Shown here: positions 18,329 through 56,474 of the stretch, piece by piece
How the letters are laid out: every line of letters begins with the position of its first letter
How positions within the stretch are numbered: position 1 is the stretch's first letter
Assembly: GCA_002269645.1 (NCBI GenBank)
Contig: NIVC01001117.1
Location: 1 to 64,000, forward strand
DNA length: 64,000 nucleotides
Reading direction: 5' to 3'
DNA from: Macrostomum lignano
Lineage: Eukaryota
Notes under the pieces: model-generated
What the model was told of the DNA's origin: nothing
The model's input: the letters and a program-made list of their open reading frames with translations, nothing else
The model's database searches: none
Translations under genes and position numbers: made by a program

Positions 18329-21300
18329 ATGAGATCGCCTTTGCTGCTGGTAATTGTATCGCTTCTTCTACTAGGAGAAGCCGCAGAAATTGCCCGGGCT
18401 CTGCGCCTCGCCGTGCTGGCTGAGCCGGGGCTGCTGCAGCCGGGTCTGGTGCAGCGAGTCGTCGACAGGCGGGTCAACCAGAACCCGCTGCTGTTCCCCA
18501 GCCTCGGCGAGTCCAACCCGCTCACCTGCCAGCTCGTGTCCGCTGACGACTCCGTCTTGGCTGTGCAACAGAGTGAGACATCTATGCAGAGCTTACCAGC
18601 AACAGCTGTTGTTTATCTATGGCCAGTCAGGGAATCCTAAAGACCTGGAAGTGACACTGCAATATTCAGGCCCTCCAGGCCGGTCCAACCCAGGCCGATA
18701 ACTTTTTTGGGAGAGAGGACAAAGAGGAAAAACATTTTCTTGCAGGGGCTAGTAAAGCGACTCGAAAAAGGGAGGAACGAAGGATAGAGAAGGGGTTGAG
18801 TGGACTGAGAGGATAGAGAGTGCAGAGAAAATCACTGTCCAAATAAAGACTGATTCAATATGAAAGGAGCGCATTGTACATGAGTGTACGAATTCTAAAC
18901 ATGATGACGCACTGTTGAATGCACACATAACTCTTATGCCCCTATCGAGCTGCATTTAAGTAAGCTTTCGTGTGTTCATAATCAAACTGAATATCCTCTC
19001 ATTTGCAAGCATCATAATGGGTTACAAGTGCTGTGTATTTGGCTGCAAATCTGGCTACGCGTCGCAGAAGACAGAAAATGTGAGCTATTATGCTTTTCCT
19101 AAAGACACCAACTTGCGACAGCGCTGGCTTCGCGCCATTCCAAATGCTGATTTAAATGCTTCCGAATTTCAACGCGTCTGCTCGAAGCATTTCACTGAAT
19201 CAGATTTCGTGAAGAGTTCATCGGATGCGAATCAACGCCGGAAGAAACGACGCTTTTCTGCATCTGATTCAAAGCTGCATCTGATTCGACTCAAAGACGA
19301 TGCAGTTCCATCTCAATTTGAAGGCTTGCCGAAATACCTGAGCAAGCCAATTACGCAGGTAAGAAGTCAAAATGCCACTTCCGCTGCGCGCTTCATGGGA
19401 GACCAAGTCCGCTTAGATGAGGAAATCAGCGACTTTTTTGGCTCCGACGAGTTGTGCGATTTCAGCGATTTGATTCAAAAGCTGGAACAAGCGACGATTC
19501 CCTCTGGATTCGTCAGAAGTAAGGAAGCAGATTCAGTCTCGTTTTACTTGATAACAAGATCTGACTCGATTTCAGCTCCTTGTCTGCTTGCCTCTATGAC
19601 AGTACTGCAGGACCTTACCTTCCAAGTCTTCATCTCTGGCCTTTCTTGCTCTGATAGCATGTTTAAACACCTGCTCAAAGATGACTCGCTACATGTGCGT
19701 CAGCTTTCGACTTTAGAAAACATGTTAGCCTTGATTAAGTCTTCGGCTACTGTTGCTGTTGACTCTCGCAATTCAAATGTGTCGTCTGCATTTGTTGAAG
19801 GCGTTTTAAAAGTCTACCTCGAATCTTTGAGTGATGATTCTGAACTGAGCAGCAATGTCAATTTCTTAGCTGAACAGTTCTCACTGATTCATCAAAAAGT
19901 ATCTGCTCGACGATATTCACCATCAACAACTGTGTTTGCGTACTTGATCTTTTCGACAAGTCGTGCCGCCTATAAGGCAATCCTAGAAAATGGTGCCCTC
20001 TGCCTACCATCTGTAAGAAGCCTTGTCAGGCTAAATGCTGTTCTTTCGAAGGAGCCTGGAGTGGTTGAGGAAATGTACCTGCAGTTGAGGACAGAGTCAC
20101 TGTCTAGCAGAGAGAAGCACGTTGTGCTCATTATTGATGAGGTCGCAACAGCTAAAAGAATCGAGTTCAATTGCGACTCTGCTTACGGCCTTGCGAGTGA
20201 CGGTAAAATGACCTCCTCAATTCTTGCCTTTCTAATCAAGTCCGTCGGCGCATCCTATCAGGATGTTGTCGGTCTATTTCCTGTTAACTGCTTGACCGCT
20301 CTGGACTTATGCAACATGGCCAAGGAAGTGATTGCGGCTGTCACAAAGAGTGGATTTGAAATTGTTGCATTGTCCTGTGACAACTCCTCTGTCAACCGAA
20401 AGTTTTACTCAATGTCAGCTGTACCTGAACATGGGCTGTCTATGCGACATCCATGTGACGATCAGAAAGAAATCTTCTTGCTGATGGACACTACTCACAA
20501 CATTAAAAATGTGTATAACAACTTTCAGAGACGAGGTGTATTTCACTGTCCAGCGTTCGACAATTGCAGCAACTTTGTGGCAAGGTTCAGTGATGTTGAG
20601 GCTATTTTTGAAATTGAAAGAGGTCAGTCGTCAAAGATTGCCTTCCGTCTGTCGGAGAAGGTTTTACGTCCTCTTAATGTCGAGAGAACTAGTGCTTCAC
20701 TGGCTGCAGCTGTGTTCGATGACACAACAGTTTCTGCACTCAGACTGTATTCAAGCACAAAGAGCACGGAGGTAGACACTTCAACGTTCAATAGCACAGC
20801 CAATTTCTTGTCCATGATCAGGAAGCTGTGGGCAATATTGAATGTTCGAACGCCATTCGCCGGTCAACAATTAAGAAGACCGGAAAGTGAGCCGCAAACT
20901 AATATGCAAGACTGGCAGCTCCAGTACCTTGCTGACTTTGTTGGCTTCCTAAAGAAGTGGCGAGCGGTATCAACAGGCGCAGATGGTCTGACAAACGAGA
21001 CATTTGGCAGCCTCATTCAAACATGCTCAGCCATTCCACTATTGTGTGCGAAACTTTTTTCTACTGGCCACTTTGACTACATTCTGCTGGGAAAGTTGTT
21101 GTCCGATCCTCTTGAAAGGCAGTTCGGAAAGTACAGGCAGATGTCCGGCGGATTGTATTTTATCAGTGCAAAGCAGGTCGTTCAGTCCGAGAATAAACTT
21201 AGAATGACTTCATTGCTTAAGCACTCGGAAATAGACTTGCTACGCTTAAAGAAGTCTTTCATGAAGGATGTTGAGCAGGAAGACACTGACGTTAGTCTAA

Positions 21301-24300
21301 GAGCAGCAGAAATCTTCGCTGATGTGTCAGATGAGCCATGCATGACCTTGCGCAGTAACGAGATGGGCTGTTTGAACGTGATGTTCTACATAGCAGGTTA
21401 CCTTTCAAAGTCCATCAGCAAGGGATGTGCTGATTGTAGAGAATTTTTGGTGAGCGAAGACAAGGTCCCTCCAATGGAAGTGACTCTCGACGATGCTCCT
21501 AATCGTGATTTCCTAGTTCGACAGTCATCACGGGGAGGACTGTGCTGTCCATCGGATTCTGCTTTCGTTCTCTGCATGACAGCGTTCAATTCGTTTGAGC
21601 TCATCAAGGGCTCCAAGCAGCTGCTGCAGAAGCTTCTTAGCTTTAAACCGCATCAAACATTCGCATCAGTCGTGATAGTAAAAACTCAAAACTGTGCAAA
21701 ATTTTCGGCTCGTCGCTTCCGCTGCTCAAATCATTCACTTAGACAAGTCATTCGGCAGTTTTCTTTCCGACTCCTAAACTGTTTTCTGAAAAACCTTTCT
21801 TCTGAAGCTAACCGCCCATCCGTTGTAGGCAAACGGAAATCGGGAGAACAGAAGAGAACTGAGGACTGCTCTCGCAAACTGGCCAAATTGAATCCTTAGT
21901 ACTCGTAATAGTATATTTTTATAAGCTTCATTGTTTTGACGATTCCGAGTTACTGCTAATTATTTTATTTACGAGTAAGCTCCCAGTTTATCCTGATGCA
22001 TAATTACTGCCTTTCTGATGTCCGATGATCCTTCAACCCTGGTAAGTTTGATTAAAACCCTTTTTATGTTTATATAGCCTATGGTTTACCAGTTTTATGC
22101 ATAATTGTTTCTTATAAAAGGCCTCATGAAACTTTCGTTTATTTCGTTACAATAAGGACTTTAAAAAATTCAGGGGATATGACTTTTCAGCGCTGTATCA
22201 TCGAGTTGATACTGAAAACCCTATAGAAAATGGCATGGGCTGCCTTGTTTGGTTAGGTAGGATCGGCCTGAGTTGGACCGCCCCCATTGGACAGTGTCAC
22301 TTCCAGGTCTTTAGGATTCCCTGGGCCAGTGCATCAATGCACTCTGTTTATCTATGGCCAGTGCATCAGTGCACTCTGTTTATCTATGGCCACTGCATCA
22401 GTGCACTCTGTTTATCTATGGCCAGTGCATCAGTGCACTCTGTTTATCTATGGCCAGTGCATCAGTGCACTCTGTTTATCTATGGCCACTGCATCAATGC
22501 ACTCTGTTTATCTATGGCCAGTGCATCAATGCACTCTGTTTATCTATGGCCAGTGCATCAGTGCACTCTGTTTATCTATGGCCACTGCATCAGTGCACTC
22601 TGTTTATCTATGGCCAGTGCATCAGTGCACTCTGTTTATCTATGGCCAGTGCATCAGTGCACTCTGTTTATCTATGGCCAGTGCATCAGTGCACTCTGTT
22701 TATCTATGGCCAGTGCATCAATGCACTCTGTTTATCTATGGCCAGTGAATTAGTGCATTCTGATTATCTATGGCCAGTGCATCAGTGCACTCTGTTTATC
22801 TATGGCCAGTGAATTAGTGCACTCTTTTTATCTATGGCCAGTGCATCAATGCACTCTAATACACTCTAGCTGTAAAACAATAACATTAAAATCCTATACT
22901 TAATTAATTACCTTGCAGTCTGTCGGTCCAGCGGATTCCACGGCCTCGTTACAGTCGGCAGCTGCTCTCTGGGCAGCTCGGTGCACCGGCTGGCCAAGTC
23001 CTTGCGAGTGCCCGCCATTTTTGTGCCAGCGGGGGAGCTGTGCCAGCTGGACACTGCAGAGTCTGGTATGTGAGCTGTGCCTGCTGGACACTGCAGAGTC
23101 TGGTATGTGAGCTGTGCCTGGTGCATGGACACTGCAGAGTCTGGTATGTGAGCTGTGCCTGCTGGACACTGCTGAGTCTGGTATGTGAGCTGTGCCAGCT
23201 GGACACTGCTGAGTCTGGTATGTGAGCTGTGCCTGCTGGACACTGCAGAGTCTGGTATGTGAGCTGTGCCTGCTGCATGGACACTGCTGAGTCTGGTATG
23301 TGAGCTGTGCCAGCTGGACACTGCTGAGTCTGGTATGTGAGCTGTGCCTGCTGGACACTGCTGAGTCTGGTATGTGAGCTGTGCTTGAGCTGTGCGTGAG
23401 CTGTGCGTGAGCTGTGCGTGAGCTGTGCGGGAGCTGTGCGTGAGCTGTGCGTGAGCTGTGCGTGAGCTGTGCGTGAGCTGTGCGTGAGCTGTGCGTGAGC
23501 TGTGCGTGAGCTGTGCGTGAGCTGTGCGTGAGCTGTGCGTGAGCTGTGCGTGAGCTGTGCGTGAGCTGTGCGTGAGCTGTGCGTGAGCTGTGCGTGAGCT
23601 GTGCGTGAGCTGTGCGTGAGCTGTGCGTGAGCTGTGCGTGAGCTGTGCGTGAGCTGTGCGTGAGCTGTGCGTGAGCTGTGCGTGAGCTGTGCGTGAGCTG
23701 TGCGTGAGCTGTGCGTGAGCTGTGCGTGAGCTGTGCGTGAGCTGTGCGTGAGCTGTGCGTGAGCTGTGCGTGAGCTGTGCGTGAGCTGTGCGTGAGCTGT
23801 GCGTGAGCTGTGCGTGAGCTGTGCGTGAGCTGTGCGTGAGCTGTGCGTGAGCTGTGCGTGAGCTGTGCGTGAGCTGTGCGTGAGCTGTGCGTGAGCTGTG
23901 CGTGAGCTGTGCGTGAGCTGTGCGTGAGCTGTGCGTGAGCTGTGCGTGAGCTGTGCGTGAGCTGTGCGTGAGCTGTGCGTGAGCTGTGCGTGAGCTGTGC
24001 GTGAGCTGTGCGTGAGCTGTGCGTGAGCTGTGCGTGAGCTGTGCGTGAGCTGTGCGTGAGCTGTGCGTGAGCTGTGCGTGAGCTGTGCGTGAGCTGTGCG
24101 TGAGCTGTGCGTGAGCTGTGCGTGAGCTGTGCGTGAGCTGTGCGTGAGCTGTGCGTGAGCTGTGCGTGAGCTGTGCGTGAGCTGTGCGTGAGCTGTGCGT
24201 GAGCTGTGCGTGAGCTGTGCGTGAGCTGTGCGTGAGCTGTGCGTGAGCTGTGCGTGAGCTGTGCGTGAGCTGTGCGTGAGCTGTGCGTGAGCTGTGCGTG

Positions 24301-27300
24301 AGCTGTGCGTGAGCTGTTGTCCAACTCATTCATCCTGCAGAGTTTGCTTTTGTTGGCGATGATCACCCTAGCAGACTTTTGTCTGCAGTCGTCGCCCTGC
24401 TGAAGTCGCACTCAGCCAGCCTCGTGTCCGTGTTCTATGACAGTCACCAGGGTATGCGGCTGCTCTAAAATTGCCTTTTGTTATAATAGACTTAAACCAT
24501 TGCTAATTGATACGTCGTAAACGACAAACTTCAGATGAGAGCCAGATGCAGTCGCTCCAGTCGCAGCTGTCAGCCTCAGGCATTGCGGCTGTCAGCTTTC
24601 AAACTGATGCTCCAACGTCAAACATATCGAGAATTCTGGCTGATTCCATTAAAAAGAAAATCCGATTCAATCTGATCTTTGCCAGGCCCGATGCTGTCTA
24701 CAGTCTGATAAGACAGGTGCTGTTTCACACTAGCTTTCAATTTCCAAATTTTTGGCCTTTATATTTTGATTGCGAAGCAAATTTTGCAGGCGGTTCAAGC
24801 GGAGGCAGTGCAGGCCCACTACTACTGGCTGGCTCTGGACGAGGGGCTGCGGCCGAACCAGCTGCTGCGGCTGCTGCCACCCAACGTGTCGGCCAACGTC
24901 ATGCTGGTCCGCGGCTCGAGTCACGGCCTGCTGGATCCGCAGCGGCTGCGGCTGAGCGGCGGCTGTCCCGACGCCCTGCGAGCCGTCATGGGCGACTCGT
25001 GCGACCCAGGAGCTGTCAGCGTGAGCATCTGAGCATTCTCATTGAGCCTTGGCATCTGAGCATTCTCATTGAGTCTTGGCATCTGAGCATTCTCATTGAG
25101 CCTTGGCATCTGAGCCAAGGACTTCTAGACTAACAGGACGTAAAACTCAAAAATCGTGCAATTTTTTGGAGGCCACGATTTCCTGGAAATAATACACTGC
25201 GAAGATAGGAAAAAATCAGTTTTTCGTCACAAAATCTGTGATTGTATTTGATCTGGGGCAGTGAAGACTACCATTCTTTTAATTTAACATGCACAACATG
25301 TTACTCTATTATATTTTCATATAGCTGTGTATTGAAGTTTTCATTTTCATGTTGTTTTTACTTCATTTCATAAGCCCAAAGTTGCAAATACTCACAAGTG
25401 GCATTAGCCAAATATCAAATTTAAGAAAAGAAAAGCTATTCAAATTTGTAATATAATATTTTTTTAGCCTTTAAAATAAAAATTATAAAAATACTAATCA
25501 ATGTTTTTTCTTATAGATTACCTAGTAAAAATGGTTAGGGCCTATTTTTGTGATTAAGTCTATTATTCTTAAATCTTAGTCTTAAATATAGGCTTGGCTT
25601 AAAAACTGATAATACAGCTTTCTCAAGCCTAGGTAAACAACAATATGAAACTATGTATTGGTAATCTATATATAATAAAAAAATCTGTCTAAATTTAATT
25701 ACTTATTAGGCTAGATAGTGCAGTGATAGGTCTAGTTCTAGTAGGCCTAGGAATTAGTATAGTTACTAAACCTACAATAATAGCTTAAGATTAAGAGTAC
25801 CTACATGCACAGTTTTTATTACAAATATACTTGATTCAAAAAAGGAACAGCACAAAAAGTTTGGCTAATGCCACTTGTGAGTATTTGCAACTTTGGGCTT
25901 ATGAAATGAAGTAAAAACAACATGAAAATGAAAACTTCAATACACAGCTATATGAAAATATAATAGAGTAACATGTTGTGCATGTTAAATTAAAAGAATG
26001 GTAGTCTTCACTGCCCCAGATCAAATACAATCACAGATTTTGTGACAAAAAACTGATTTTTTCCTATCTTCGCAGTGTATTTTTTCCAGGAAATCGTGGC
26101 CTCCAAAAAATTGCACGATTTTTGAGTTTTACGTCCTGTTAGTCTAGAAGTCCTTGATCTGAGCATTCTCATTGAGTCTTGGCATCTGAGCATTCTCATT
26201 GAGCCTTGGCATTCCGGCCATTGTGACCCGTGGTGGGCAAGCCATTGTGACCCGTGGTGGGCAAGCCATTGTGACCCGTGGTGGGCAAGCCATTGTGACC
26301 CGTGGTGGGCAAGCCATTGTGACCCCTCAGCCTCCGTAGCTGCAGATGCGCTCCCAATCGCACTCAGTGAACTCATTTTCTCATCGAACATTCCAGTCTG
26401 TTGAGCTGCGCACCATTGACGCAGTTCTGGCCATGACGAGGGCTGTCCACAGCGTCACAGGCGGCTACACCAGCTCGAGCTCCACCAACGCCAGCTGCAA
26501 CGGCGCCACTCGAGCATGGCCTGATGGCGCACTGGCAGCTCGCGCTCTCGCTAAGGTTGTGAGCGACTTGTCTGCATTCCAACACATTCACATCCGGCAT
26601 CACTGCTGGGAAACTTTTCATTGGAATTCCAGACCACGGACTTCAACACACTCGGCTCTCTGATTTCCTACAATGGCACCACGAGGCACTTCACCAGCTA
26701 CATCGAGGCGGTGTCCACCTTCCACGCCTTCTACACGAGTCCGCTGAGGTACATCGAGAGCGCCAGGTACCACCTCGACAACGCCTCGCTCAGCGTCTCG
26801 TTCGTCTACAAAGACAGGCGACTGGCTTTCCCGAACACCTTCGTGGACTTCAAGAACCGAACTCTCCGAGTCTGCGCTCCGGATGTAGGAGCTAAATTTC
26901 AACTGTCACACTGAAGTATTTGGATTTCATACTTGAAAACTATACCTATTATTGTCTTGAATTTCAGGTTCGTCCCTACGTAATCTACGACGAGAACACT
27001 TACGGAAAGGTCACCGGCCACGCTGAGGATGTGCTCAATATTGTGCGAGAAAATCTGAACTTCTCGTTAGTGACTCGAAAGCGTGAAAATTCTTAGTCAA
27101 TGCCACCAGTTTTAATGCAACTAACATATTGCACCGAGGGGGGGGGGGGCCGTAGCCCAGCGGTAGCGCAGATGCTCTGGTGTCCAGCGACCCAGGCTCG
27201 ATTCCAAGTGCAGTCGCATTAATTTGGGGCTGAATTGGAATTTCGGCTTGGCTCTGCTCGTGCAATTAACGGCTTTGAGAGCCAACCCCCCAAGGCACAG

Positions 27301-29924
27301 TGAAGTGTACATGCCTAACGATAAATAAAGTTAGGGCCGCTGTACACTCCTGTGTGAGTGTGTGCCTGCGTACGTATCCGCGCGCTTGTGTGCCTGCTCA
27401 GGGGAGTCGGCGGAATGGGCAGTAATGCCTCTCGCCGGTTGTGTGCCTATGTCGCTTAAAAAAACATATTGCACCAATATTGCAGAACCATCGTTCTGAA
27501 GCCGCCAGACGGGCAGTTCGGGGCGCCAATCAATGGCACGCAGCGCTTCTCCGGCTGCATTGGAGAGCTGCAGAATGGCGTGAGTTGCTTCTTGAAGATG
27601 GCTTAAGAGTCGCGACGGCTTCAAGTTGTTTGATAAATCTAGCTGTGAGTTTCAGTTTGTTCATCCGATTTCTCTTCCAGAAAGCAGACTTGGCAGTCGT
27701 TTTCGCTGTCACCAATCTGCGCTATGCCGTCGTGGACTACTTGGACGACTACCTGTACTCATCCAACAACATCCTGGTCCGCATACCGCCTCCTGCCAGC
27801 AAAATCTGGAACGTGTTCACGCCGATGACGCTGCAAGTTTGGCTGCTGCTGGCTGCCTCCATCTTCATCGTGCCCTTCATCATCTACCTGCTGGCCTTGT
27901 TCAGCCCCTTCTCCGTTTGGAACCTGAAACTGAGCTTCGCTTTCGCCGACGAGGTCTGGTACAAGGAATACCTGTGGTCCACCATCGGCAGTTTCTTGCA
28001 ACAGGGTCAGGACTTTTATCCATTCGCAATGTCGCCCAGAACCGTGATGGTGTTCTGGTGGCTGCTCACCGTTATTATATTTGGTGCATACACTGGAGAC
28101 CTGACTGCTCACCTGGCTACATCAGTCAGCAGTTTGACTATTAGGACTCTGGAAGACCTGGTGTCCATGCCTTACTACACGGCTTTAGTACCAAGGGGAA
28201 CCAACATTCACACGGCGATTGACATGGCTACGTCGGGACCGATGTTCCAGCTGAAGTCCATGACTGTGCTGGTGCAATCGCACGAGGACTGCGCTAGGAA
28301 GGTGAGGACTGTGCGCCCCGAATTTGGAATTCTTAGAACAGAAAGGTGCAACGAATCGGTGAAATTATGCGCTTTTAAATTTTCAACTTTCAGCTGCTGG
28401 CCTCAACCAATCCGTACACTGTGTGCATCGCGGATCAGAAGTCCAATCTGTACTTTGCTAACCAATTCTGCGAAGAAATGTACGTGGCTGACGAGTATTT
28501 TAACTTCTACTATCTGGCGTGGCCTGTGCCCAAGGATGCGTTCTATGCTGACGCCATGAACTTAATGTAAGCCGCTAATAAAGGGGATAAAGGGGATAAA
28601 ATGGGGATCTCATGTCAACTTAAGGCTCTGGAATGGAGCCCGAAGTTCAGCTCCGGACCAAACCGACTGCAATCGATAACTTGTCGGCCCAGACGACTAG
28701 AATCGCCGAGACATCCCATCCGGGTCCCTTCCTTGGGCTGACTGAAACTCCTCTTGCTGGCCGCTAGGCTGTTGCTCAGTAGGCTTCCGCTGCTGTGGTA
28801 AAGCATTTTCTCTGGCATAAAGTCTGGCAACAAGGCTGCGTGGAAGAGCGGAATCAACAAAGCGAAGGCTGGCACCAGACCTTCGATAGCTATCTTTGTG
28901 GTAAGCGTAGCAGCCCAGGAGTTTGAGCACTGCCATTGCATGACAATCGCAGCCTGCAGTCCTACTTCCAGCTTTTGCTGATGAGCAGTAGCCATGAAGA
29001 AGTTGCAATCATGGATCTCTAAAACCAAAGCGATTGTCCGCTGCTGTCACATACTCTAAGAATCACGCGGTAGGATTTCGAATTATGGCGCGAGAAAACA
29101 ACAGCTAGAAAAATCAAGACGGATGCCACCGACCGAATCGGTTGCTCCAGTTTTCTGGCTGCGTCTCTTGCCGAAACTTCCAACACTTGGATCCAGCGGG
29201 TTGACAGCAATCCATGCCCTTGCGTTGTTAGCAGAGGGGGGCACGCTTCAGATCACAGTTGAAGTGCAGCTGCTCAATTTCGTCCAGTTCGTTGGACAAG
29301 AGCACTCGGCGCATGAAATTCTCACCGAATTCGAACAACGATAGCCCTGTCCATGACGGTGGCAGCTGTTTAAATGATTCAAAACCTGGATGCGCCCGGT
29401 TGTACTTTGCCATCGAGGTCTCGATAACAACGTCTAATCGGCTGGGCTCACTGAAGCCGGCTGACGGCAGCCACTGATACGGTTTGTGCCTCTCGTTAAC
29501 ACATTAGTCCTGCTTAATGGCAGCAAAGCAGCACATAGCGGAACATAGTGGCACAGCGGATGTCTCGGCGATTCTAGTCGTCTGGGCCGACAAGTTATCG
29601 ATTGCAGTCGGTTTGGTCCGGAGCTGAACTTCGGGCTCCATTCTGGTGCTTAAGTTGACATCCCCTTTACCTTCTAGAATTCGTCGGGCTAAAGAGAACG
29701 GCCTCGTTGACATGCTCCGGTTGAAGTACTTCCCAACTAGCAGCTCAGAGTGCTCAAGTGCACAGGGAGGGATATCGGATGCTGAGCCAATTAACCTGGA
29801 GGGCATCGGCGGATCCTGCTTGGTGCCAGGAGTCCTGTACTTAATTGGACTGCTCATCCTGCTGCTTGAGCTCTTCTGGACCGCCTGTCTGAACAAGGAT
29901 CCGCTGCAATGCGTCCTGTTCTGA
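18329..29924 (+). CDS. Divergent ionotropic glutamate receptor / IR-like subunit, paralog A, 12 exons: 18329-18572, 22919-23065, 24341-24451, 24535-24716, 24790-25020, 26397-26558, 26633-26884, 26968-27065, 27486-27579, 27681-28301, 28394-28566, 29678-29924 (about 853 aa)
   Basis: Splice phases close without a stop (2562 nt). Signal peptide, ATD, S1 (PYVIY...G...NFS; GCIGELQNG; ADLAVVFAVTNLRYAVVDY), M1, pore LWSTIGSFLQQG, M3 GAYTGDLTAHL, S2, ENGLVDMLRLKYF and M4. The exon 6 acceptor could instead be 26339 or 26345. Confidence 0.9.
18628..22323 (+). mobile_element. Full-length P-superfamily (THAP9/Galileo-like) DNA transposon, 3696 bp, in intron 1 of iGluR A
   Basis: Perfect 32-bp TIRs (cagggaatcctaaagacctggaagtgacactg at 18628-18659; reverse complement at 22292-22323), subterminal inverted blocks, and 7-bp TSD ggccagt (18621-18627, 22324-22330). 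The empty site is present in paralog B near 38295-38320. Confidence 0.95.
19017..21899 (+). CDS. THAP-domain P-element-type transposase, intronless, about 960 aa from ATG 19017
   Basis: N-terminal THAP finger (CCVFGC...FP...W...CSKHF...AVP); catalytic motifs LIIDE, SCDNSSVN, DTTHNIKNVYNNF and SDPLERQFG; C-terminal CADC and RGGLCCPS; uninterrupted ORF. Confidence 0.95.
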   Translation: MGYKCCVFGCKSGYASQKTENVSYYAFPKDTNLRQRWLRAIPNADLNASEFQRVCSKHFTESDFVKSSSDANQRRKKRRFSASDSKLHLIRLKDDAVPSQFEGLPKYLSKPITQVRSQNATSAARFMGDQVRLDEEISDFFGSDELCDFSDLIQKLEQATIPSGFVRSKEADSVSFYLITRSDSISAPCLLASMTVLQDLTFQVFISGLSCSDSMFKHLLKDDSLHVRQLSTLENMLALIKSSATVAVDSRNSNVSSAFVEGVLKVYLESLSDDSELSSNVNFLAEQFSLIHQKVSARRYSPSTTVFAYLIFSTSRAAYKAILENGALCLPSVRSLVRLNAVLSKEPGVVEEMYLQLRTESLSSREKHVVLIIDEVATAKRIEFNCDSAYGLASDGKMTSSILAFLIKSVGASYQDVVGLFPVNCLTALDLCNMAKEVIAAVTKSGFEIVALSCDNSSVNRKFYSMSAVPEHGLSMRHPCDDQKEIFLLMDTTHNIKNVYNNFQRRGVFHCPAFDNCSNFVARFSDVEAIFEIERGQSSKIAFRLSEKVLRPLNVERTSASLAAAVFDDTTVSALRLYSSTKSTEVDTSTFNSTANFLSMIRKLWAILNVRTPFAGQQLRRPESEPQTNMQDWQLQYLADFVGFLKKWRAVSTGADGLTNETFGSLIQTCSAIPLLCAKLFSTGHFDYILLGKLLSDPLERQFGKYRQMSGGLYFISAKQVVQSENKLRMTSLLKHSEIDLLRLKKSFMKDVEQEDTDVSLRAAEIFADVSDEPCMTLRSNEMGCLNVMFYIAGYLSKSISKGCADCREFLVSEDKVPPMEVTLDDAPNRDFLVRQSSRGGLCCPSDSAFVLCMTAFNSFELIKGSKQLLQKLLSFKPHQTFASVVIVKTQNCAKFSARRFRCSNHSLRQVIRQFSFRLLNCFLKNLSSEANRPSVVGKRKSGEQKRTEDCSRKLAKLNP
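22324..22860. repeat. 32-bp minisatellite (tctatggccagtgcatcagtgcactctgttta) in iGluR A intron 1; target of the P element
   Basis: Direct reading; the same array lies in paralog B at 38295-38965. Confidence 0.95.
23030..24318. repeat. 37/42-bp exon-end/donor duplications followed by an 11-bp array (gtgagctgtgc)n
   Basis: Direct reading. Confidence 0.95.
25116..26156. mobile_element. Non-autonomous foldback DNA element, 1041 bp, about 297-bp TIRs, 8-bp TSD
   Basis: 25116-25412 is the near-perfect reverse complement of 25860-26156. Ends are CAAGG...CCTTG, the TSD atctgagc lies at 25108-25115 and 26157-26164, and the core is AT-rich and non-coding. Confidence 0.92.
26217..26325. repeat. 24-bp repeat (gccattgtgacccgtggtgggcaa); a 27-bp repeat split by the foldback element lies at 25021-25115 and 26157-26215
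   Basis: Direct reading. Confidence 0.9.
27136..27462 (+). mobile_element. tRNA-derived SINE copy 1 (3' end shorter than the other copies)
   Basis: Pol III A box tagcccagcgg, B box ggctcgattcc, short A tail, and 13-bp TSD aacatattgcacc (27123-27135, 27463-27475). Confidence 0.88.
28579..29669. mobile_element. Terminal-inverted-repeat element occupying almost all of iGluR A intron 11
   Basis: 86-bp perfect inverted repeat (28631-28716 and 29558-29643) with imperfect extension out to taaaggggat / atccccttta. TTAA at 28620-28623 and 29650-29653 is a possible TSD. No intact transposase; superfamily unresolved. Confidence 0.75.
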
Positions 29925-30478
29925 TGGTTGTTTTGGGCGTTTGAAAAATTTTTAATATGCGGTTTTAATCGCAACTTTAATATGCTTAAGTTTTTTCTTG
30001 ATTTAATTGTGAAGCACTAATTAGGCATAAAGTTAAGACATTGGAACTTTTGTGTCACCAGAGATCATGTAACTTGTTATACTGAAGTGATCAGCTGATA
30101 ATTTACCATTAACTGATATCTCACAGTATTGCACTGGCACCTATTCAACTTACTTCGTAGGGTCCCGATATTATCACGTACGCTCGTACACAAACAAATA
30201 ACAGTTGCAAAAAAATGCACCAACTGTAAGTCCTTATATTAAAATATTATCCCCAATTCACATTGGCGTACTAATCTTGAAGTAAGGAATTATGTAAATT
30301 ACTGTATATAGGGTTTGAAAGCCTACCAAAGTATAATATATTCATAAAAAAAATAATTTCTTTATTTCCAGTCCAACCTGATCTGGATTTGCAAGTTAAT
30401 CTATATAGGTTTGAGGCTAAATTCATTTGGGGCTCAGGTGGCAACATTTTTTTTCTAGGGCTTCGTAGTTAGTCAGTC

Positions 30479-30531
<53 letters not shown>

Positions 30532-30532
30532 A

Positions 30533-30624
<92 letters not shown>

Positions 30625-30625
30625 C

Positions 30626-30843
<218 letters not shown>

Positions 30844-30844
30844 A

Positions 30845-30923
<79 letters not shown>

Positions 30924-30924
30924 A

Positions 30925-31087
<163 letters not shown>

Positions 31088-31088
31088 A

Positions 31089-31242
<154 letters not shown>

Positions 31243-31243
31243 G

Positions 31244-31305
<62 letters not shown>

Positions 31306-31322
31306 CAGTCAGTCAGTCAGTC

Positions 31323-31372
<50 letters not shown>

Positions 31373-31375
<3 letters not shown>

Positions 31376-31841: not shown

Positions 31842-34800
31842 TGTTGTAGAAATTGAACAAGTCTGAGGGCCGTCAATTTAGCTAACAAGAAAAAATCAAC
31901 AATTAAGCGCTCACTGAGAGGCCTGCGAATATATTATATATTTAGCTCAGTCTCTCGCAACAACGTGGCAGGCACACAACTAACCCTAACACTCCCCCCT
32001 AATGATGCTTCATCATTACAGTATTTAACACTGATATTCGAAAAAGGAAACTCGCTATGAACTTAAAAGAAATTAAACGAAACGAATAGCAAAAAAACAA
32101 ACGAACAACAAAAAACGCTTCAACATTACAACAGACTTGATAACTAAAAATGTGACGCACCATCACTACCCTCCTGCCCTCCAGACAGCGACTATATATT
32201 TTTCATTGGTCCTACGCGTACATGAATATACCTTAAGAACAAATGTACGGTACAGCAGGGGAGGTGGGGCGGGGTGGCGTGATCGGCGTACGCGTTAATT
32301 ATTGATTGGATGGGTGGGGCAGACTGGAGGGTTGGGGCGGGGCAGGAGGGCGAGAAAGGGCACGATTGCACAACAAAAGCAGAAACAGAATTGGCGCCAA
32401 GGAGCAAAAATGTAAGCACCGTCACCAGCGTACTGTAAATTAGAGAATCCCAAATGTCGCGTTGAAAAGTTTACTCAGAGCACGAGCACGATATGCTGGG
32501 ATAAGAACTGAAGATTGAAACTAAGGAGAGCTAAAGACTGAGAAGTCAGATGTCAATAGTCTCTGTCAGCTTAAGAAAAGTCAATAACAGTTCATTCATT
32601 CACGGCTTCTAGCAAAATCAGGTTCTCAACCGGCCGGCGAATCAAGCATCTCCTGGGTCCGCGGTCTGGCCTTTGCACGACTCGAACTGTTGCCGATCTC
32701 ACTGCTCCGTCTCGTCCCGGATGCACCGCCTCGATAATGCCAGTACACCAGGTGAGCCTCGGTTGGCCAGCTTCGCCTTTCACCAGGACGATGTCACCGA
32801 TCGTTGCCTCTCGGATCACGCCGTGCTTAGGATTGAGCCGATGTTCACGCAGGCTGGTCAGATACTGCCGCTCCCAGCAGTCCCAGAAGGCGTGAAGTCT
32901 GGCGCGCATTCGCTTCAGCATTTTTGGCAACGGTAGCAGAAGATCCGGCGCGCAACTAGAAGTAGGTTCCGCTGTCAGCCGCTGCAACACCAGGAAGTGT
33001 GCCGGTGTCAGACCTTTGGGCTCGGCATCCACGTAGAGCAGAGGGCGACTGTTGAGCACCGCCTCCACCCCATGAGCAGTGTCAGCAGTTCGTCCAGTGT
33101 TAGACTTGCATTCAGAAGGGTTTTGCGCAGCGCCAGTTTGATGTCCTTAATCAGTCGCTCCTAGAAGCCTCCTTGCTAGGGTGCGCGTTCGGTGATGAAC
33201 TGCCAGGTAATCTTCCGAGCGGCGCAGAACTCCTGAACCTTTTGACTCTCCGATGCTTGTAATATCCGCGCGGCTTTGACGAATGTCTTAGCTTTATCGC
33301 TGATGAGACTAGGGATACCTCTCCTTGCACAGAATCTCCTTAGGGCTCTTAAGAAGGTCTCAGTTGTTAGATCTTTCACCAGTTCTAGATGAAGCGCTCG
33401 CGTTGCTGCGCAGGTAAACACTAAAATTTAGCCCTTCTCGACAGCAGTGTCTTCTCTCAGCTTGACCGGACCACAGTAGTCGAGCCCGCTCCACTCGAAT
33501 GATCTCATTGCTTTCACGCGAGATTCTGGCAACGCAGGAACTTGCTTCACAGCGAACGGGAGTCCCTGAAGACGCCTGCAGACGACGCATTTTCCAAGAA
33601 TTGCCTTCACTCGCTGCCTGCCACGGATCAGCCAAAACTTCTCTCGCAGTTTGCAAAGGGTGCTTGGAACTCCCCCGTGCAGAACTTTGCTGTGCGCGTC
33701 TCGGATGAGGAGAACTTCTAGATGAGTCTTGTTCGGGATGAGGATGGGGCAATCAGCAGCTATTCGGTGCCTCTCGAGGAAGAGATTAAGCTGCTTTGCG
33801 AGGTCCATAGATGCTGTCGACCTTTCAAAGTGAGCAATCTCAGCAGGGAAACTCCTTCGTTGTACATCTTTCAGCCAACGCTCCTCTGCTTCTGACACTT
33901 CTGCAGCTGTCAAAGTTCCTGCTCGCTCCTCCCCCGCTGCGGAAGTTCGAACTTGTAGGTTCTTGACAAATCGAAAGACGTAAGCCGTCACCCTAATGAG
34001 CTTGGTCCAGGAGGAGAAATCCGAATCTGGTATAACTCGATGCAGTCCCAAGTCCGGAACATCAGTGAGAAGGACGATTGATTTGTCTGCTGATGGCTTC
34101 TGCTCCTCGTCTGCCGTTGCTGAGGTTAGATTGAGAAAGGATTGGCCAGGCTAGCCTTCTGGAGGTCGAGTCAGCCAATCAGGACCATGCCACCAGCTGG
34201 TATCAGTCTTCAGCTTGTCGACCGAAGTGCCGCGAGATGCAACACTGGCAGGGTTCTCATTGCCTGGCACGTGTCGCCATGATTCCTCCGGAAGCAGCCC
34301 GCGGATCTCAGAGACTCGGTTGTGAACAAAAGAGCTTCCATGGCTTGTGCTGTCGGATCCAGTACAGAGTATCGGCACTATCTGTCCAGCAGAAAACTTG
34401 GCGGACTTGAGGATGTTGACTCAGGGCTGAAATCACTAGTCTGGCCAGTATCAGGGCAGCTAATAGTTCCAGCCGAGGAACCGACAGGGCCGATAGTGGA
34501 GCCACTCCGGCCTTCGCCGTCACCAGGATATAGCTGACAGAACCGTCGGTGTACTGAACTCGTAGGTAGAGACAAGCCGCGTAGCATTTTGCGGATGCGT
34601 CACAGAAGCCATGCAGCTGCATCTCTTGGACCACCCGTGTCGCGAAAAGCACCAGCCGCGGTACCTGGAATCGTGCTTTCAGCATGTCCTGCAGCCACTT
34701 CTGCCACAGCTGTTCAGTCGGCTCATCCAGCGGGCAATCCCAAGCAACTTTGTGAGCACAGAGCGTCTGAAACATTGTTTTCGGCTAAGTCAGTAGTGGA

Positions 34801-36783
34801 ACTAGGAAGCCGAGAGGATCATAGTCACGTGCCAGAAGCTGTAGCATGACTCGCTTGGATTGCGTAGCTCTGAGTAACTCCTCTGGTGGTGAGAACCGAA
34901 GCACGAACACGTCCGATCCGGTTTCCCAGTGCAACCCAAGGACCTTCGACAACACGCCCTCCTCACTCAATGAGGCGGAGGAGTAGCTCCCCTGGTCCTC
35001 CGTCATTCTGAGAGTCTCTACTGACAGGGCTGGAGCCAGAATGTCCTGGTCTGTAGCGCTAGCTCGAACTGCGGACAAAACCGCTTTACTGTTGGACTGC
35101 CGATGGCGTAGACTCATACCTGCCTGGCGGAAGACGTGACGGGATTTTTGGATGAGTTCCATGGCTTGCCGTTCGCTTGCACACCCAGAGATTAGATTGT
35201 CCACATAGATCTCTTTCGATACTTTGTCCATGAACTGCGCATCCTGGTCCTGATGAGATGCTAAATGATGTTGAATGACCGTCTCCAGAATCGCAGGTGA
35301 GCAGGTGAGTCCGAATACCAAAGCGGCGTAACGAAGAACAACGAGTGGCGATTCAGCTCGACTTGGATCCTGTGGCCAGAGAAACCGCAGTGCATCCCGA
35401 TCTTCTTCAGCAATGCGAATCTGAAGAAACGCCTCAATATCAACTGTAAGAGCGATCGGATGAAACCGGAATGCTTGAAGAAGACGAGGAATCTCGACTA
35501 ACGAACACGATCCAGTCTCCAGGCACTCATTCAAGGACGAGCTCCACCGATCTCGCTTAGCACTGGCATCGAAAACTACTCTGACCTTTGTCGACTCTGC
35601 TTCAGGACGAATCACTGCTCGGTGAGGCAAGTAGTGGACAAGATGGTGCGTGCCGTCGGGAACCTCCTCCACTATTCCAGCTGTAGCTGTAGAGAAGATG
35701 TAGGGTACCGTGTTAGCGCGCAATGTGAAGGGAGTGACGCCGTCAAGCTTACGAAGTTGTAACTCAACCTTTTCCGTTTGTAAGACCTTGGGCTCGGTGC
35801 CTCCAAATGTAGTCACTTCCATTGTCTCTGCCGATCACACAGAGTCCCATACGCTCAGCTACGCCCGACAGGATGAATGAACGGTTGCTCGCAGAGTCAA
35901 AGAGAATTCGAACCCGTGTTTCACTGCAGCCATCTGGTGAAATCAGTACAGCTCCCGCAGTACGAAGAACTACTGTCTGGGCCTTGGTGACCATCGCCAT
36001 AGTCTTTACTTCGTGACTCTTGACACTCTGCGCGGCCGACTGTTCGACTTTCTTCTTCTCTGAACCCGCCGTATCGAAGGTGCAATAGGCGTCTTGTCTG
36101 CCGGTCTCGGTGGCTGTTCCACTCGCGCAGCGCAGACTGGGATGATGCTTTAACCACAGATCTTATAAACACTAGATAGGCCACTCCAGCTAATTTATTC
36201 ACAACACGACTGTTTACTCTACTTTCTGCTTAGTAGTAGTAAAAGCATTTTAGCGTTATTTATATTTAAAAAACAAAAAAACAAAATGAATGCAATGCAG
36301 CAATTGTATTGATTTTAATTGCAAAAAGAAACTTATAATTATACTTTCTACAATTCAAAGCAACATAGTGAATGCTTTAGATTGCATTGAAGGCTATATT
36401 ATTGTAGTCAACTATTGTATATTTAGCAAATACGACCTATATCATATACTCTATATTCGTGTAGCAAAATAGAAAGATTTCTCGTTTTAATCAGCTCATC
36501 TGTTTGTGAAACTTTCGCAGCGTGCTGTCGAAGCACAGGGTCGCCAGTCGCCTTTGTTCAGAGGCAGCATTCAGCACGGCTTAAGAGATGAAAAAAACTG
36601 GCAAATCCCCCTTCGAATCCCCCTTAATCAACAATTAAGCGCTCACTGAGAGGCCTGCGAATATATTATATATTTAGCTCAGTCTCTCGCAACAACCACC
36701 CCACCATGCGTACAGAGGAGAGGGGACGCTAAGCGTACATACAAACCAGAGGGTGCTAGGCAGGCACACAACTAACCCTAACA
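31842..36783 (-). mobile_element. Decayed Bel/Pao LTR retrotransposon
   Basis: 3' LTR at 31842-31991 (TG...CA) with polypurine tract aggggggag adjacent; partial 5' LTR at about 36626-36783; agtta flanks; internal pol fragments in Bel/Pao order PR-RT-RH-IN. Confidence 0.92.
32592..36120 (-). pseudogene. Frameshifted, internally deleted Bel/Pao pol polyprotein; gag almost absent
   Basis: Protease ILFDSASNRSFI; RT YLPHRAV...VRVVFDAS...FGLTCSPAIL...YVDNL; RNase H LHGFCDAS...PRLELLAA...WTDS; WRHVPG.ENPA; integrase zinc finger H..LH...C..C, GLDYCGP, FTCAATRALHLE, RRGIPS and LNSRPL; split over several frames. Confidence 0.92.
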
Positions 36784-36823
36784 AGTTAGTTAGTGAGTTA
36801 GCTATTTAGTCAGTTAGTTAGTC

Positions 36824-37162
<339 letters not shown>

Positions 37163-38294
37163 GTAGCTAATCAGTTATTAGCTAGACTTTAGTTTTTCGG
37201 CTACAAACAAAAACCAAGAGCATAGAGCATACTCTCCCTGAAGAGACTGATAATTATATAATATAACCTGAAAATTAAATAAGTGTACAAGTAGTTAATA
37301 AGTATACAAAAAATTCATGGTATGCTGAAAAGTACGCGTAGGTGAATCGATACAAATAAATGTAAATGAAGCCCTCTCCTAAGCAGTCAGTTGCACCCCC
37401 GCCAGTCGATTGTGCTCGGCAGGCAAACTGTGGCAGACAAATGACAGCATCCCTGTGCAGTGTCACTCAACTCTGCTTAAACGGGGTGTGGCTACGGTGT
37501 ACTTTCTGCGTGCAGTTGCACCGGTGCACAGCGCCAGACATATTGGTGCAGACGTCAGCACGATAGGAAATTCCTAATTACTTTTGTCTTGCCATTTGGG
37601 TTCCCGATTATCAACTGCACGCAGTTCCCCCTGCCCTAACTGGCTATTGTGGATCGCTTTGGAGGCAAAAGGAGTCCTGATTAGTGCGACAAAAGTAATG
37701 ATACACGAAAATGAAAGCTGAAGCCGTTAATTCGCGAGCCAAATATCGATTCGAGCATCGCTGAGACTCTGATCCCGTTAAGAAACTGTCCTTAGTGCAT
37801 CGATTCGACCCCAAAAACACCCAACCAGCTTAGTTATCTCAGTGTCGCCTCCGGGAAGTTCTTGTCTCTGTTAAATTAACGGTTTCTCTGGTCGATATCG
37901 ATTGATTATTCACTGAGACACGGCGAGATGACCAACTTCTGTCTATATAATAACTCACCTGATCCTCTGCCGTTGAATTTTCTTTGCTCCGCAATCTAAG
38001 AGTCAAGAGTCTGCCTCTAAAGCTACGGATTTTATTCACAATGCTGGCGCTGCTAATGTTGTCGCTTCTTTTACTAGGAGAAGCCGCAGAAATTGCCCGG
38101 GCTCTGCGCCTCGCGGTGCTGGCTGAGCCGGGGCTGCTGCAGCCGGGTCTGGTGCAGCGAGTCGTCGACAGGCGGGTCAACCAGAACCCGCTGCTGTTCC
38201 CCGGCCTCGGCGAGTCCAATCCGCTCACCAGCCAGCTCGTGTCCGCTGACGACTCCGTCTTGGCTGTGCAACAGAGTGAGACATCTATGCTGTT

Positions 38295-38965
38295 GTTTAT
38301 CTATGGCCAGTGCATCAATGCACTCTGTTTATCTATGGCCACTGCATCAGTGCATTCTGTTTATCTATGGCTACTGCATCAGTGCACTCTGTTTATCTAT
38401 GGCCAGTGCATCAATGCACTCTATCTATCTATGGCCAGTGCATCAGTGCACTCTATCTATCTATGGCCAGTGCATCAGTGCACTCTGTTTATCTATGGCC
38501 AGTGCATCAGTGCATTCTGTTTATCTATGGCCAGTGAATTAGTGCACTCTGTTTATCTATGGCCAGTGCATCAGTGCATTCTTTTTATCTATGGCCACTG
38601 CATCAGTGCACTCTGTTTATCTATGGCCAGTGCATCAATGCACTCTATCTATCTATGGCCAGTGCATCAGTGCACTCTATCTATCTATGGCCAGTGCATC
38701 AGTGCACTCTGTTTATCTATGGCCAGTGCATCAGTGCATTCTGTTTATCTATGGCCAGTGAATTAGTGCACTCTGTTTATCTATGGCCAGTGCATCAGTG
38801 CATTCTTTTTATCTATGGCCAGTGCATCAGTGCACTCTGTTTATCTATGGCCAGTGAATTAGTGCATTCTGTTTATCTATGGCCAGTGCATCAGTGCACT
38901 CTGTTTATCAATGGCCAGTGAATTAGTGCACTCTGTTTATCTATGGCCAGTGAATTAGTGCACTC
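38295..38965. repeat. 32-bp minisatellite in iGluR B intron 1 (no P element)
   Basis: Direct reading. Confidence 0.95.
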
Positions 38966-41029
38966 TAATACACTAGCTGTAAAACAATAACATTAAAATC
39001 CTATACTTAATTAATTACCTTGCAGTCTGTCGGTCCAGCGGATTCCACGGCCTCGTGGCAGTCGGCAGCTGCTCTCTGGGCAGCTCGGTGCACCGGCTGG
39101 CCAAGTCCTTGCGAGTGCCCGCCATTTTTGTGCCAGCGGGGGAGCTGTGCCAGCTGGACACTGCTGAGTCTGGTATGTGAGCTGTGCCTGCTGCATGGAC
39201 ACTGCAGAGTCTGGTATGTGAGCTGTGCCTGCTGCATGGACACTGCTGAGTCTGGTATGTGAGCTGTGCCTGCTGCATGGACACTGCAGAGTCTGGTATG
39301 TGAGCTGTGCCTGCTGCATGGACACTGCAGAGTCTGGTATGTGAGCTGTGCCTGCTGCATGGACACTGCAGAGTCTGGTATGTGAGCTGTGAGCTGTGTA
39401 GCCAGGTGCATCAAGACCCGTCCGCCAACCCAATTGCAGAGTTCTCATTCGTTGGCGAAGACCATCCCATCGGCCGCATTGGGTCTATCGAAGCCTTGCT
39501 TCGGTCAAAGTCAGCCAGTGTCGTGTCGATATTTTTTGACAATCATCAGAGTGAGCACAGGCGTTTTGAACTCAACTCTGCCGTTCATCACTTTTTTTAA
39601 ATGCCTAGGTAATACAAAAAATTGAAAAAAAAACACTTCAGATGAGCAGCTCATTCGGTCCCTGCACAACCAGCTGGCAGATGTGGACCAGCTCGAGCTC
39701 CACCAACGCCAGCTGCAACGGCGCCACTCGAGCATGGCCTGATGGCGCACTGGCAGCTCGCGCTCTCGCTAAGGTTGTGAGCGACTTGTCTGCATTCCAA
39801 CACATTCACATCCGGCATCACTGCTGGGAAACTTTTCATTGGAATTCCAGACCACGGACTTCAACACACTCGGCTCCCTGATTTCCTACAATGGCACCAC
39901 GAGGCACTTCACCAGCTACATCGAGGCGGTGTCCACCTTCCACGCCTTCTACACGAGTCCGCTGAGGTACATCGAGAGCGCCAGGTACCACCCCGACAAC
40001 GCCTCGCTCAGCGTCTCGTTCGTCTACAAAGACAGGCGACTGGCTTTCCCGAACACCTTCGTGGACTTCAAGAACCGAACTCTCCGAGTCTGCGCTCCGG
40101 ATGTAAGTCGAGAAGGCTTCCTATTAAGTTTGTAGGAGTATTGCTCACCTAATTTAAGACTTTAACAGTAGAACAACCTAGAGGGGAAGAATTCCCCCTG
40201 ACAATTTTTTGTCAACGCAGGCACACGAAATTCAAGTCTACGGACTAACTTTCTGTTGCGCACCTTCTCAAACAAGAATCAAGTCGCCAGCCCTCCAGAC
40301 CGTCGAGATATTCGACCATTCTGCCAGAAGGTCGGAATTTTTCCATAAGCGCTACTGTTCTCAGTACACCCCAGTGCGCCAAACAGCACTGCGCCAAGCC
40401 TCTAAATTTCATCATCACGTCGAAAACATGTGTCTGCATCAGCTCTGACTTCGTTGGTCACTGGCCTTCACCCTAGCGGAGCTTCTGGACCTTCACCCTG
40501 GCGGTGGGCAAGCCTCAACTGCTGGACATCCTCAGCTAGTCTCTCAAGAATTCCGTCATCACCTCGATGTTGAATTTCGTGTGCCTGCGTTGCTCCCCCC
40601 GTCCGGCGGAAAATGGCTTGGTTTTCCTACTGTTGATCCGGCTTTCCAGTTCCGGCCGTACACCGTATTCGATAACAGGACGGACGGCAAGGTCACTGGC
40701 CACTCTGAAGATCTGCTTAACGTGCTGAGGATCGACCTTAATTTCTCGTGAGCGCCGAATAATACTTGAAAATCATGATGCTTTCGGATAAAAGAGAGTT
40801 AATGAACCGCTTTTGTTGATCTGAATCTGTAGCACCATCGTTTTAAAGCCGCCTGATGGCGTCTTCGGCACTCCGATCAATGGAACTCAGCAATTTTCCG
40901 GCTGCATCGGAGAGCTGCAGAAGGGAGTGAGTCGTGCTGCTTGCTTCTATTCAATGCTTTTCTTTCCAAAGTAAATTTAAACTGGGGATTTTTAATACAG
41001 TCTTTAATTAGTCTTTGTTGTCTTTGTTG

Positions 41030-56310: not shown

Positions 56311-56351
<41 letters not shown>

Positions 56352-56353
56352 GC

Positions 56354-56406
<53 letters not shown>

Positions 56407-56409
56407 GGC

Positions 56410-56474
<65 letters not shown>

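Follow-up and report, generated by a model that had tools for sequence, protein, structure and literature searches.

A predicted ionotropic glutamate receptor subunit with a derived M3 gate motif, from a lineage-specific expansion in the flatworm Macrostomum lignano

SYTANLAAF is the most conserved element of ionotropic glutamate receptors (iGluRs), and the hinge alanine and gate-lining residues are central to models of gating. In GluA2, T617, A621, T625 and M629 make up the constriction of the gate, and A618 is the gating hinge at which M3 bends (PMC9068512). Delta iGluRs (GluD1 and GluD2) are built in the order amino-terminal domain (ATD), ligand-binding domain (LBD), M1, pore loop, M3, S2 and M4, with Asp at the position of GluA2 E705, Gln at the Q/R site and a long C-terminal domain. 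AMPA and kainate receptors (GluA1-4 and GluK1-5) have the filter motif QQGxD, Gln at the Q/R site and Gly at the first αF position. Protostome ionotropic receptors (IRs), that is IR25a, IR8a and the divergent IRs, are iGluR-derived and lineage-expanded, often in tandem, with diverged LBD and M3 motifs. Finally, uncharacterised spiralian AKDF-like receptors are represented by sequences from Haliotis and Pecten (both 'delta-1-like'), Elysia, Mytilus, Babylonia, the nemerteans Lineus and Tubulanus and the annelid Owenia. Here we describe a gene, copy A, that shares features with each of these groups. It lies in a 64,000-nucleotide stretch of the genome of Macrostomum lignano, a free-living flatworm (contig NIVC01001117.1 of assembly GCA_002269645.1, positions 1 to 64,000; hereafter the window), and is predicted to encode a subunit of the iGluR family that has an ATD and a strongly derived M3 gate motif, as an earlier note on this DNA had proposed. 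Coordinates are those of the window and refer to the forward strand unless marked (-).

Copy A (18329-29924) is a complete iGluR-family gene of 12 exons and 852 aa. The splice model places exons 1-6 at 18329-18572, 22919-23065, 24341-24451, 24535-24716, 24790-25020 and 26397-26555, and exons 7-12 at 26633-26884, 26968-27065, 27486-27579, 27681-28301, 28394-28566 and 29678-29924. Every junction is GT-AG and the frame is uninterrupted from the ATG at 18329 to the stop codon at 29922-29924, which are exactly the limits that the earlier note had given. For exon 3, an acceptor at 24314 used in a first model of 861 aa was dropped in favour of 24341, because only the latter is conserved and in frame in the tandem paralogue, copy B. 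The model is collinear from end to end, with small gaps only, with an independent full-length paralogue of 816 aa (P0178; 37% identity, E 7e-167), the N-terminal domain included. A UniRef M. lignano protein, P0001, is 99% identical to copy A across S1-M4, and the close relatives of copy A all come from M. lignano.

The predicted product has all the parts of a subunit, ATD, LBD and channel; a putative signal peptide stands before them, and a tail of only 14 residues follows M4. The signal peptide (MRSPLLLVIVSLLLLGEAAE, 18329-18388), a hydrophobic N-terminus read directly from the translation, precedes the ATD and ATD-S1 linker encoded by exons 1-7 (18389-26884). When the whole protein was compared with all solved structures, rat GluD1 was the best match (residues 65-849, E 4e-40), ATD included, with the alignment passing through M4 up to GluD1 residue 837. 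AMPA and kainate structures followed at about 1e-30, with alignments confined to the LBD and channel, and no NMDA chain was among the top 60 PDB matches. The N-terminal 408 aa alone match the isolated ATDs of GluD1 (5kc9, E 4.4e-8) and GluD2 (4e-4), which argues that the ATD of copy A is real, though very divergent; Pfam ANF_receptor was just over its cut-off (26.0 against 25.4 bits). Pfam Lig_chan was found with an E value of 1.5e-19, while Lig_chan-Glu_bd was weak and under cut-off (26.6 against 30 bits); PF10613 and PF00497 are both recorded for P0001.

A bipartite S1/S2 LBD flanks the channel, and both parts align to GluD1, GluA and GluK chains. The S1 segment FAVTNLR lies at 27702-27722, and S2 contains the αF segment PRGTNIH (28191-28211) and the β10/αI segment CIADQ (28424-28438). 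The channel has the topology M1, re-entrant pore loop, M3 and M4. Pre-M1 and the M1 transmembrane helix occupy 27804-27902 (Pfam Lig_chan and GluD1 alignment), and the pore loop LQQGQD (27996-28013) has Gln at the Q/R site and Asp at the +4 site, so that the pore would be of AMPA/kainate type (QQGxD). M3 is at 28044-28112 and M4 at 29811-29879 (GluD1 and P0178 alignments), the latter followed by the 14-residue cytoplasmic tail, which ends at 29921. Throughout the family the C-terminus lies about 14 residues past M4 and reads P-L-[DQ]-C-x-x-[YF]-COOH (PLQCVLF, PLQCIIF, PLDCVVY, PLDCIIY, PLDCFFY); the motif is found in copy A (29901-29921), copy B (44692-44712) and the paralogues P0003, P0004, P0005 and P0178. 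This conserved hydrophobic C-terminus could serve as a trafficking signal or bind PDZ domains as a class II ligand.

The gate motif of copy A, AYTGDLTAH (28086-28112), stands in the SYTANLAAF position and is identical to it at four of nine residues (Y, T, L and A8); copy B, with AYTGDLAAH (41925-41951), is identical at five. Ramos-Vicente et al. 2018 discarded sequences with fewer than four SYTANLAAF residues, and copy A is exactly at that threshold. With S615 taken as position 1, the gate-lining T617 is kept as Thr, the hinge A618 is replaced by Gly, and the gate-lining A621, T625 and M629 are replaced by Thr, Ala and Ser. Two residues that do not line the gate, N619 and F623, are Asp and His in copy A. 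Substitutions at the hinge and in the gate lining would alter the energetics of gating.

The derived motif is not peculiar to this locus. An exhaustive HMMER scan with P0001 against 1.84 billion representative proteins returned M. lignano paralogues at 43-53% identity, after which identity dropped to 33% and below. Word-index searches with a single sequence and with a profile of 27 sequences gave M. lignano paralogues almost exclusively. The expansion is Macrostomum-specific and comprises at least 10 gene models including copy A; xYTGDLTA[HK] is present in at least 10 M. lignano paralogues. The M. lignano models form a graded series of M3 motifs, from AYTANLTAF through AYTGNLTAY and CFAGNLTAY to xYTGDLTAH, found in most members, or xYTGDLTAK. 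Across these paralogues the pore loop, GSFLQQGQDFYPFAMS, hardly varies, and the Arg485 and Asp705 equivalents are kept in every paralogue whose segment is readable.

Within the Macrostomum clade, whenever Asp occupies motif position 5, position 9 is His or Lys, and Asn or Val at position 5 goes with Phe or Tyr; this is an observation on related sequences rather than a statistical test. Because Asp is always so accompanied, its charge is probably compensated one helical turn later, at i+4, and the extra acidic residue of the earlier note would not be an uncompensated charge. A pore-facing position for this Asp was considered and is unlikely on helix geometry alone: T617, A621 and T625 line the gate, and position 5, two residues past T617, falls on another helical face. 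Asp at position 5 also occurs outside the xYTGDLTA[HK] models, in another M. lignano group (YYTADMIGY), a monogenean (TYQADMTAF) and nemerteans (TYTADLVAF and TYTADLAAY).

Ligand-binding residues were assigned from a 101-sequence alignment with GluA1_Hsa as reference. In copy A the Arg equivalent to R485, which binds the α-carboxylate, is kept. T480 is replaced by Ala, P478 by Val and the aromatic lid Y450 by Val; G653-S654-T655 reads G-T-N, and L704-E705 reads A-D, the Asp being the α-amino binder. The by-eye assignments made previously against GluA2 for R485, T480, S654-T655 and E705 were right, and the short motifs on which they rested were recovered both in copy A (AYTGDLTAH at the position given above, LQQG 27996-28007, TNLR 27711-27722, IADQ 28427-28438) and in copy B (AYTGDLAAH, LQQG 41835-41846, TNVR 41550-41561, IADQ 43452-43463). 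With both amino-acid-backbone binders present, in FAVTNLR and CIADQ, copy A most likely still binds an α-amino acid, because the Arg for the α-carboxylate and the acidic residue for the α-amino group are both kept; which amino acid is not readable from sequence.

The same note had read these substitutions as a non-glutamate signature, a reading that was not supported. The signature is not specific to this gene: the combination of G-[ST]-N, x-D and a GPFTITxxR-type S1 is also found in molluscs (Haliotis, Pecten, Elysia), two nemerteans and one annelid, and the Haliotis and Pecten proteins, with some other relatives sharing the LBD signature, keep the canonical gate TYTANLAAF. Since these relatives combine the LBD signature with the canonical gate, the signature predates the change in the gate and does not depend on it. 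As to the ligand, published correlations leave the signature ambiguous. The first αF residue is Gly in all tabulated glutamate-selective receptors and is not Gly in glycine-type or other receptors (Wang et al. 2026, PMC13648236), and this correlate of glutamate selectivity is retained in copy A. In the same study T676 (T655 in mature numbering) matters for glutamate potency, T480 and the β10/αI positions do not predict selectivity, and the agonist can differ between close paralogues; no characterised receptor with G-T/S-N was found in it (PMC13648236). The conclusion that the ligand is something other than glutamate is therefore one that the sequence evidence does not permit.

The 100 best database relatives, cut to their LBD and channel core, were used for neighbour-joining trees with 100 bootstraps. 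The Ramos-Vicente alignment supplied as labelled references GluA1_Hsa, GluN1_Hsa, GluN1_Cte and the amphioxus GluF1_Bbe and GluF2_Bla; the other labelled members were vertebrate GluD1 (P0050), an amphioxus delta-2-like protein (P0065), Trichoplax GluE1 and GluAkdf4, and a Nematostella sequence that is probably GluAkdf1_Nve, judging by its length of 408 aa. The IR-like members included IR93a-like chelicerate sequences, and mollusc GluD, mollusc GluF/Zeta, IR25a and IR8a references stood outside the set. The Macrostomum clade had 100% bootstrap support. It was excluded from the Delta clade of vertebrate GluD1 and amphioxus delta-2-like (75-84%) and from the AMPA clade (95-98%, 98% with GluA1_Hsa); the amphioxus Phi pair, GluF1_Bbe and GluF2_Bla, was placed elsewhere (98%), and the whole ingroup was supported at 100% against the NMDA outgroup, GluN1_Hsa and GluN1_Cte. 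The single labelled Epsilon member (P0075, TRIADDRAFT_55165, GluE1_Tad) lay apart from the Macrostomum clade, across weak nodes. The phylogenetic check suggested in the earlier note thus places copy A outside AMPA, kainate, Delta, NMDA and amphioxus Phi, with weak deep nodes.

The nearest neighbours of the Macrostomum clade in these trees were a cestode, the other M. lignano group, unnamed transcriptome sequences and a spiralian clade (48-59% bootstrap). Clade hidden Markov models (HMMs) scored copy A at 229 bits for the spiralian group, 221 for the IR-like group, 195 for Delta, 170 for kainate and 144 for AMPA. The less derived paralogues P0003 and P0010 favour the spiralian HMM by 68-120 bits, P0010 with 417 bits against at most 297 for the other group HMMs. 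The Macrostomum expansion is thus placed, across weak deep nodes, in or next to an uncharacterised spiralian AKDF-like group of mollusc 'delta-1-like', nemertean, annelid, cestode and monogenean proteins, the grouping itself being supported at 48%. The likeness to this group, which gives the top HMM score and the nearest clade, includes the GPFTITxxR-type S1, G-[ST]-N, x-D and an (E/Q)QG pore loop. The gate separates them: TYTANLAAF is kept in the molluscs and altered by N->D alone in the nemerteans, and to this the Macrostomum clade adds A->G, A->T and F->H/K, together with a QQGQDFYPFAMS pore loop.

NCBI names within the spiralian clade are inconsistent (delta-1-like, kainate 3-like, glutamate receptor 1-like), which shows that the clade has no clear class. 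Flatworms were not sampled by Ramos-Vicente et al. 2018, and Zeng et al. 2021 (PMC8437780) described mollusc Phi genes and a mollusc-only 'Zeta' class; the spiralian clade may be the same as one or both of these mollusc classes. Copy A lies outside the AMPA and kainate clades and lacks their glutamate signature (G-S/A-T with L/M-E), from which G-T-N and A-D differ by T655->N and E705->D, and its gate hinge and lining residues are changed. The Delta LBD signature (S1 (A/S)(I/M)TIT..ER, αF D-[ST]-[SA], β10/αI W-D) is absent as well, the corresponding segments of copy A being VFAVTNLR, G-T-N and A-D.

Downstream of copy A lies its tandem paralogue, copy B (38041-44715), located by tblastn with copy A and by splice models. 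Its exon remnants 1-5 are at 38041-38275, 39026-39172, 39440-39550, 39642-39773 and 39851-40102, and remnants 6-10 at 40650-40747, 40833-40926, 41520-42140, 43419-43591 and 44472-44715. Two lesions were found. The first is a 132-bp fusion exon (39642-39773) in which the start of exon 4 is joined to the end of exon 6, so that about 150 residues of the ATD are gone (copy A residues ~187-337 in the 861-aa first model, ~178-328 in the 852-aa model). The only phase-compatible splicing of this exon produces a frameshift followed by a premature stop; no in-frame alternative acceptor was found (no suitable AG in the region), and no exon skip fits the splice phases. The second is an in-frame TAG at 43545-43547, in exon 11 within S2 upstream of M4, where copy A has TGG (Trp). 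Because the ATD deletion shifts the frame and the TGG->TAG stop is independent of it, copy B, with its M3 motif, is in this assembly a pseudogene: a tandem duplicate whose inactivation was recent. The earlier claim that a full ATD is retained therefore stands for copy A and fails for copy B. This pseudogene status, the presence of the derived M3 motif in other M. lignano paralogues and the sharing of the LBD signature with mollusc, nemertean and annelid relatives that keep the canonical gate are three features that the earlier note had missed.

Between the two copies dN/dS, the ratio of nonsynonymous to synonymous substitution rates, is 0.19 over 494 alignable codons. This value indicates long-term purifying selection: the A/B lineage has been constrained for most of its history, and the inactivation of copy B is recent. 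Divergence between the copies is a mosaic. Exon 7 and its flanks (26469-26887 against 39687-40105) are 99.5% identical, with a synonymous divergence (dS) of 0.017, while exon 8 (26968-27065 against 40650-40747) has saturated dS and 59% amino-acid identity. Such a mosaic points to exchange between paralogues by gene conversion or recombination, or to a gene that was chimeric from the start, with parts from different paralogues.

On these data we think it reasonably likely that the product of copy A functions as a subunit of a Q-site cation channel of AMPA/kainate-like type, gated by an amino acid and with altered energetics of its gate. The subunit would join a tetrameric ligand-gated cation channel of the iGluR superfamily, in which the Arg/Asp dyad would hold an α-amino-acid ligand. 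Closure of the clamshell would pull M3 open, by an unchanged mechanism. The energetics of this step would differ from those of canonical iGluRs through the glycine at A618, the Thr, Ala and Ser at A621, T625 and M629, and the Asp at N619 with its His at i+4. Several points weigh against this assignment. Copy A has lost the aromatic lid and the P478 and T480 equivalents, and its binding pocket may be substantially remodelled. The deep nodes of the neighbour-joining trees are weak (34-59%), long-branch effects are likely, and the spiralian HMM scores copy A barely above the chelicerate/nemertean IR-like HMM. Moreover, the tandem partner is already a pseudogene, so that the locus is under turnover.

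An alternative is that copy A is an IR-like chemosensory receptor, that is, a member of an environment-facing, fast-turnover family expressed in sensory cells. It would then detect a cue that is not a neurotransmitter, such as another amino acid, an amine or an acid, and might act as a tuning subunit alongside a co-receptor. Chemoreceptor families typically show lineage-specific expansion, tandem copies and fresh pseudogenes, as seen here, the upper-lobe pocket is remodelled and variable among paralogues (Y450->V/A/Y, P478->V, T480->A), the IR-like HMM nearly ties with the best score, and the ligand cannot be predicted from sequence (PMC13648236). We nevertheless regard this explanation as unlikely. 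Copy A retains a full ATD, which most of the divergent arthropod IRs lack, together with the Arg/Asp amino-acid-binding dyad and the αF glycine. The pore loop is extremely conserved, and the conserved hydrophobic C-terminal motif is more like a scaffold ligand. Paralogue counts in M. lignano are inflated by genome duplication, and grouping with the IR93a-like chelicerate sequences reached only 42% bootstrap, which leaves copy A without a supported grouping with the IR-like sequences of the set. The IR-like or chemosensory label of the earlier note was supported by no test.

It is less probable still, and in our view improbable, that copy A is not a normal ligand-gated channel, either because it is an unexpressed or dying gene like copy B or because its altered gate is leaky or does not gate. 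The neighbouring copy is dead, and five of nine SYTANLAAF positions are changed, with substitutions at the hinge and in the gate lining (Gly at the hinge, Thr at A621, Ala at T625). Substitutions in SYTANLAAF (Lurcher, A7-type) can render iGluRs constitutively active. Intron 1 of copy A also contains an apparently recent insertion of 3.7 kb, a P-element/THAP9-like DNA transposon of 3,696 bp (18628-22323), which is not part of the receptor. It is bounded by perfect 32-bp terminal inverted repeats (18628-18659 and 22292-22323) and a flanking direct duplication, GGCCAGT, and has an open frame of 979 uninterrupted codons (18960-21896) with THAP, TNP-like RNase H and GTP-binding insertion domains. 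The insertion is recent, because the paralogous site in copy B (~38285-38305) is empty of it, and the element may be autonomous. The transposon is, however, intronic and clear of the splice sites; the open reading frame and all splice sites of copy A are intact, and the dN/dS of 0.19 speaks against decay. Finally, the derived motif is conserved in at least eight paralogues that are 37-55% identical, which shows selection for the motif rather than decay.

That copy A is the flatworm representative of Delta, GABA-gated as invertebrate Deltas are (Rosano et al. 2024, PMC10861852) or a poorly gated synaptic organiser binding D-serine or glycine like vertebrate GluD, is highly improbable: GluD1 is the best structural match, only Delta ATDs were significantly detected, the closest mollusc relatives are named 'delta-1-like' by NCBI and Asp stands at the E705 position, but the supported Delta clade excludes the Macrostomum clade, the Delta HMM scores under the spiralian one, the Delta signatures AITITPER, D-S-[AS] and W-D are replaced, the gate is AYTGDLTAH rather than SYTANLAAF, and the tail has 14 residues in place of the long Delta C-terminal domain.

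Minisatellites dominate the introns, in introns 1-2 of copy A (22324-24317) and at 38294-39391, 41031-41487 and 42301-44301 in copy B. Their units are of 32 bp (x17-21), 37/41 bp (x6-9) and 11 bp (GTGAGCTGTGC, x86), with further arrays of 27-, 18-, 21- and 74-bp units. The exon-2 donor CTG|GTATGT is carried by a 37/41-bp unit; with the 11-bp unit a GTGAG donor-like site recurs 86 times, and only the first donor is in frame. A 316-bp inverted repeat pair of 96.5% identity (27145-27460, in intron 8 of copy A, and 31731-31417, downstream of the gene) is probably a short interspersed element or one resembling a miniature inverted-repeat transposable element. Between the copies, retroelement remnants occupy 33428-35822 (-), with an integrase zinc-binding frame at 33428-34051 and a second frame at 34785-35822 (-) that has a weak reverse-transcriptase match under the Pfam cut-off. 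Long tetranucleotide microsatellites flank the intergenic region between copy A and copy B, (TAGT)x227 at 30466-31374 and (AGTT)x100 at 36784-37185. Elsewhere in the window, weak Pfam matches to 7tm_1 (5735-6457 (-)) and SH2 (56209-56889 (-)), both under cut-off, and to CUB (3546-4169), just over it, hint at other genes.

To return to the proposed amino-acid-gated subunit, a stronger claim would be that the xYTGDLTA[HK] receptors are a functionally distinct, flatworm-specific iGluR type, with a new gating phenotype and a ligand other than glutamate, glycine, D-serine or GABA. We hold this to be doubtful. If it were true, the glycine hinge, the swapped gate-lining residues and the Asp-His/Lys pair would give, for example, channels modulated by protons or pH, of high open probability or constitutively active, and the G-T-N/A-D pocket with its lost aromatic lid would bind such a ligand. 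We found no paper describing the Macrostomum family. Its proteins are already public as unnamed predictions, and the family is a real, uncharacterised iGluR subfamily that is ordinary in kind, not a new kind of molecule. Among invertebrates, divergent expansions of iGluRs and IRs within single lineages are common, and the practical value of one more is modest. The family is nevertheless a natural mutagenesis experiment on gating, in which purifying selection is found alongside an Ala->Gly hinge, swapped lining residues and an Asp-His/Lys pair. None of the proteins in the spiralian clade around it has been functionally characterised, and expression of even one of these receptors would help to complete the map of iGluR ligand selectivity.

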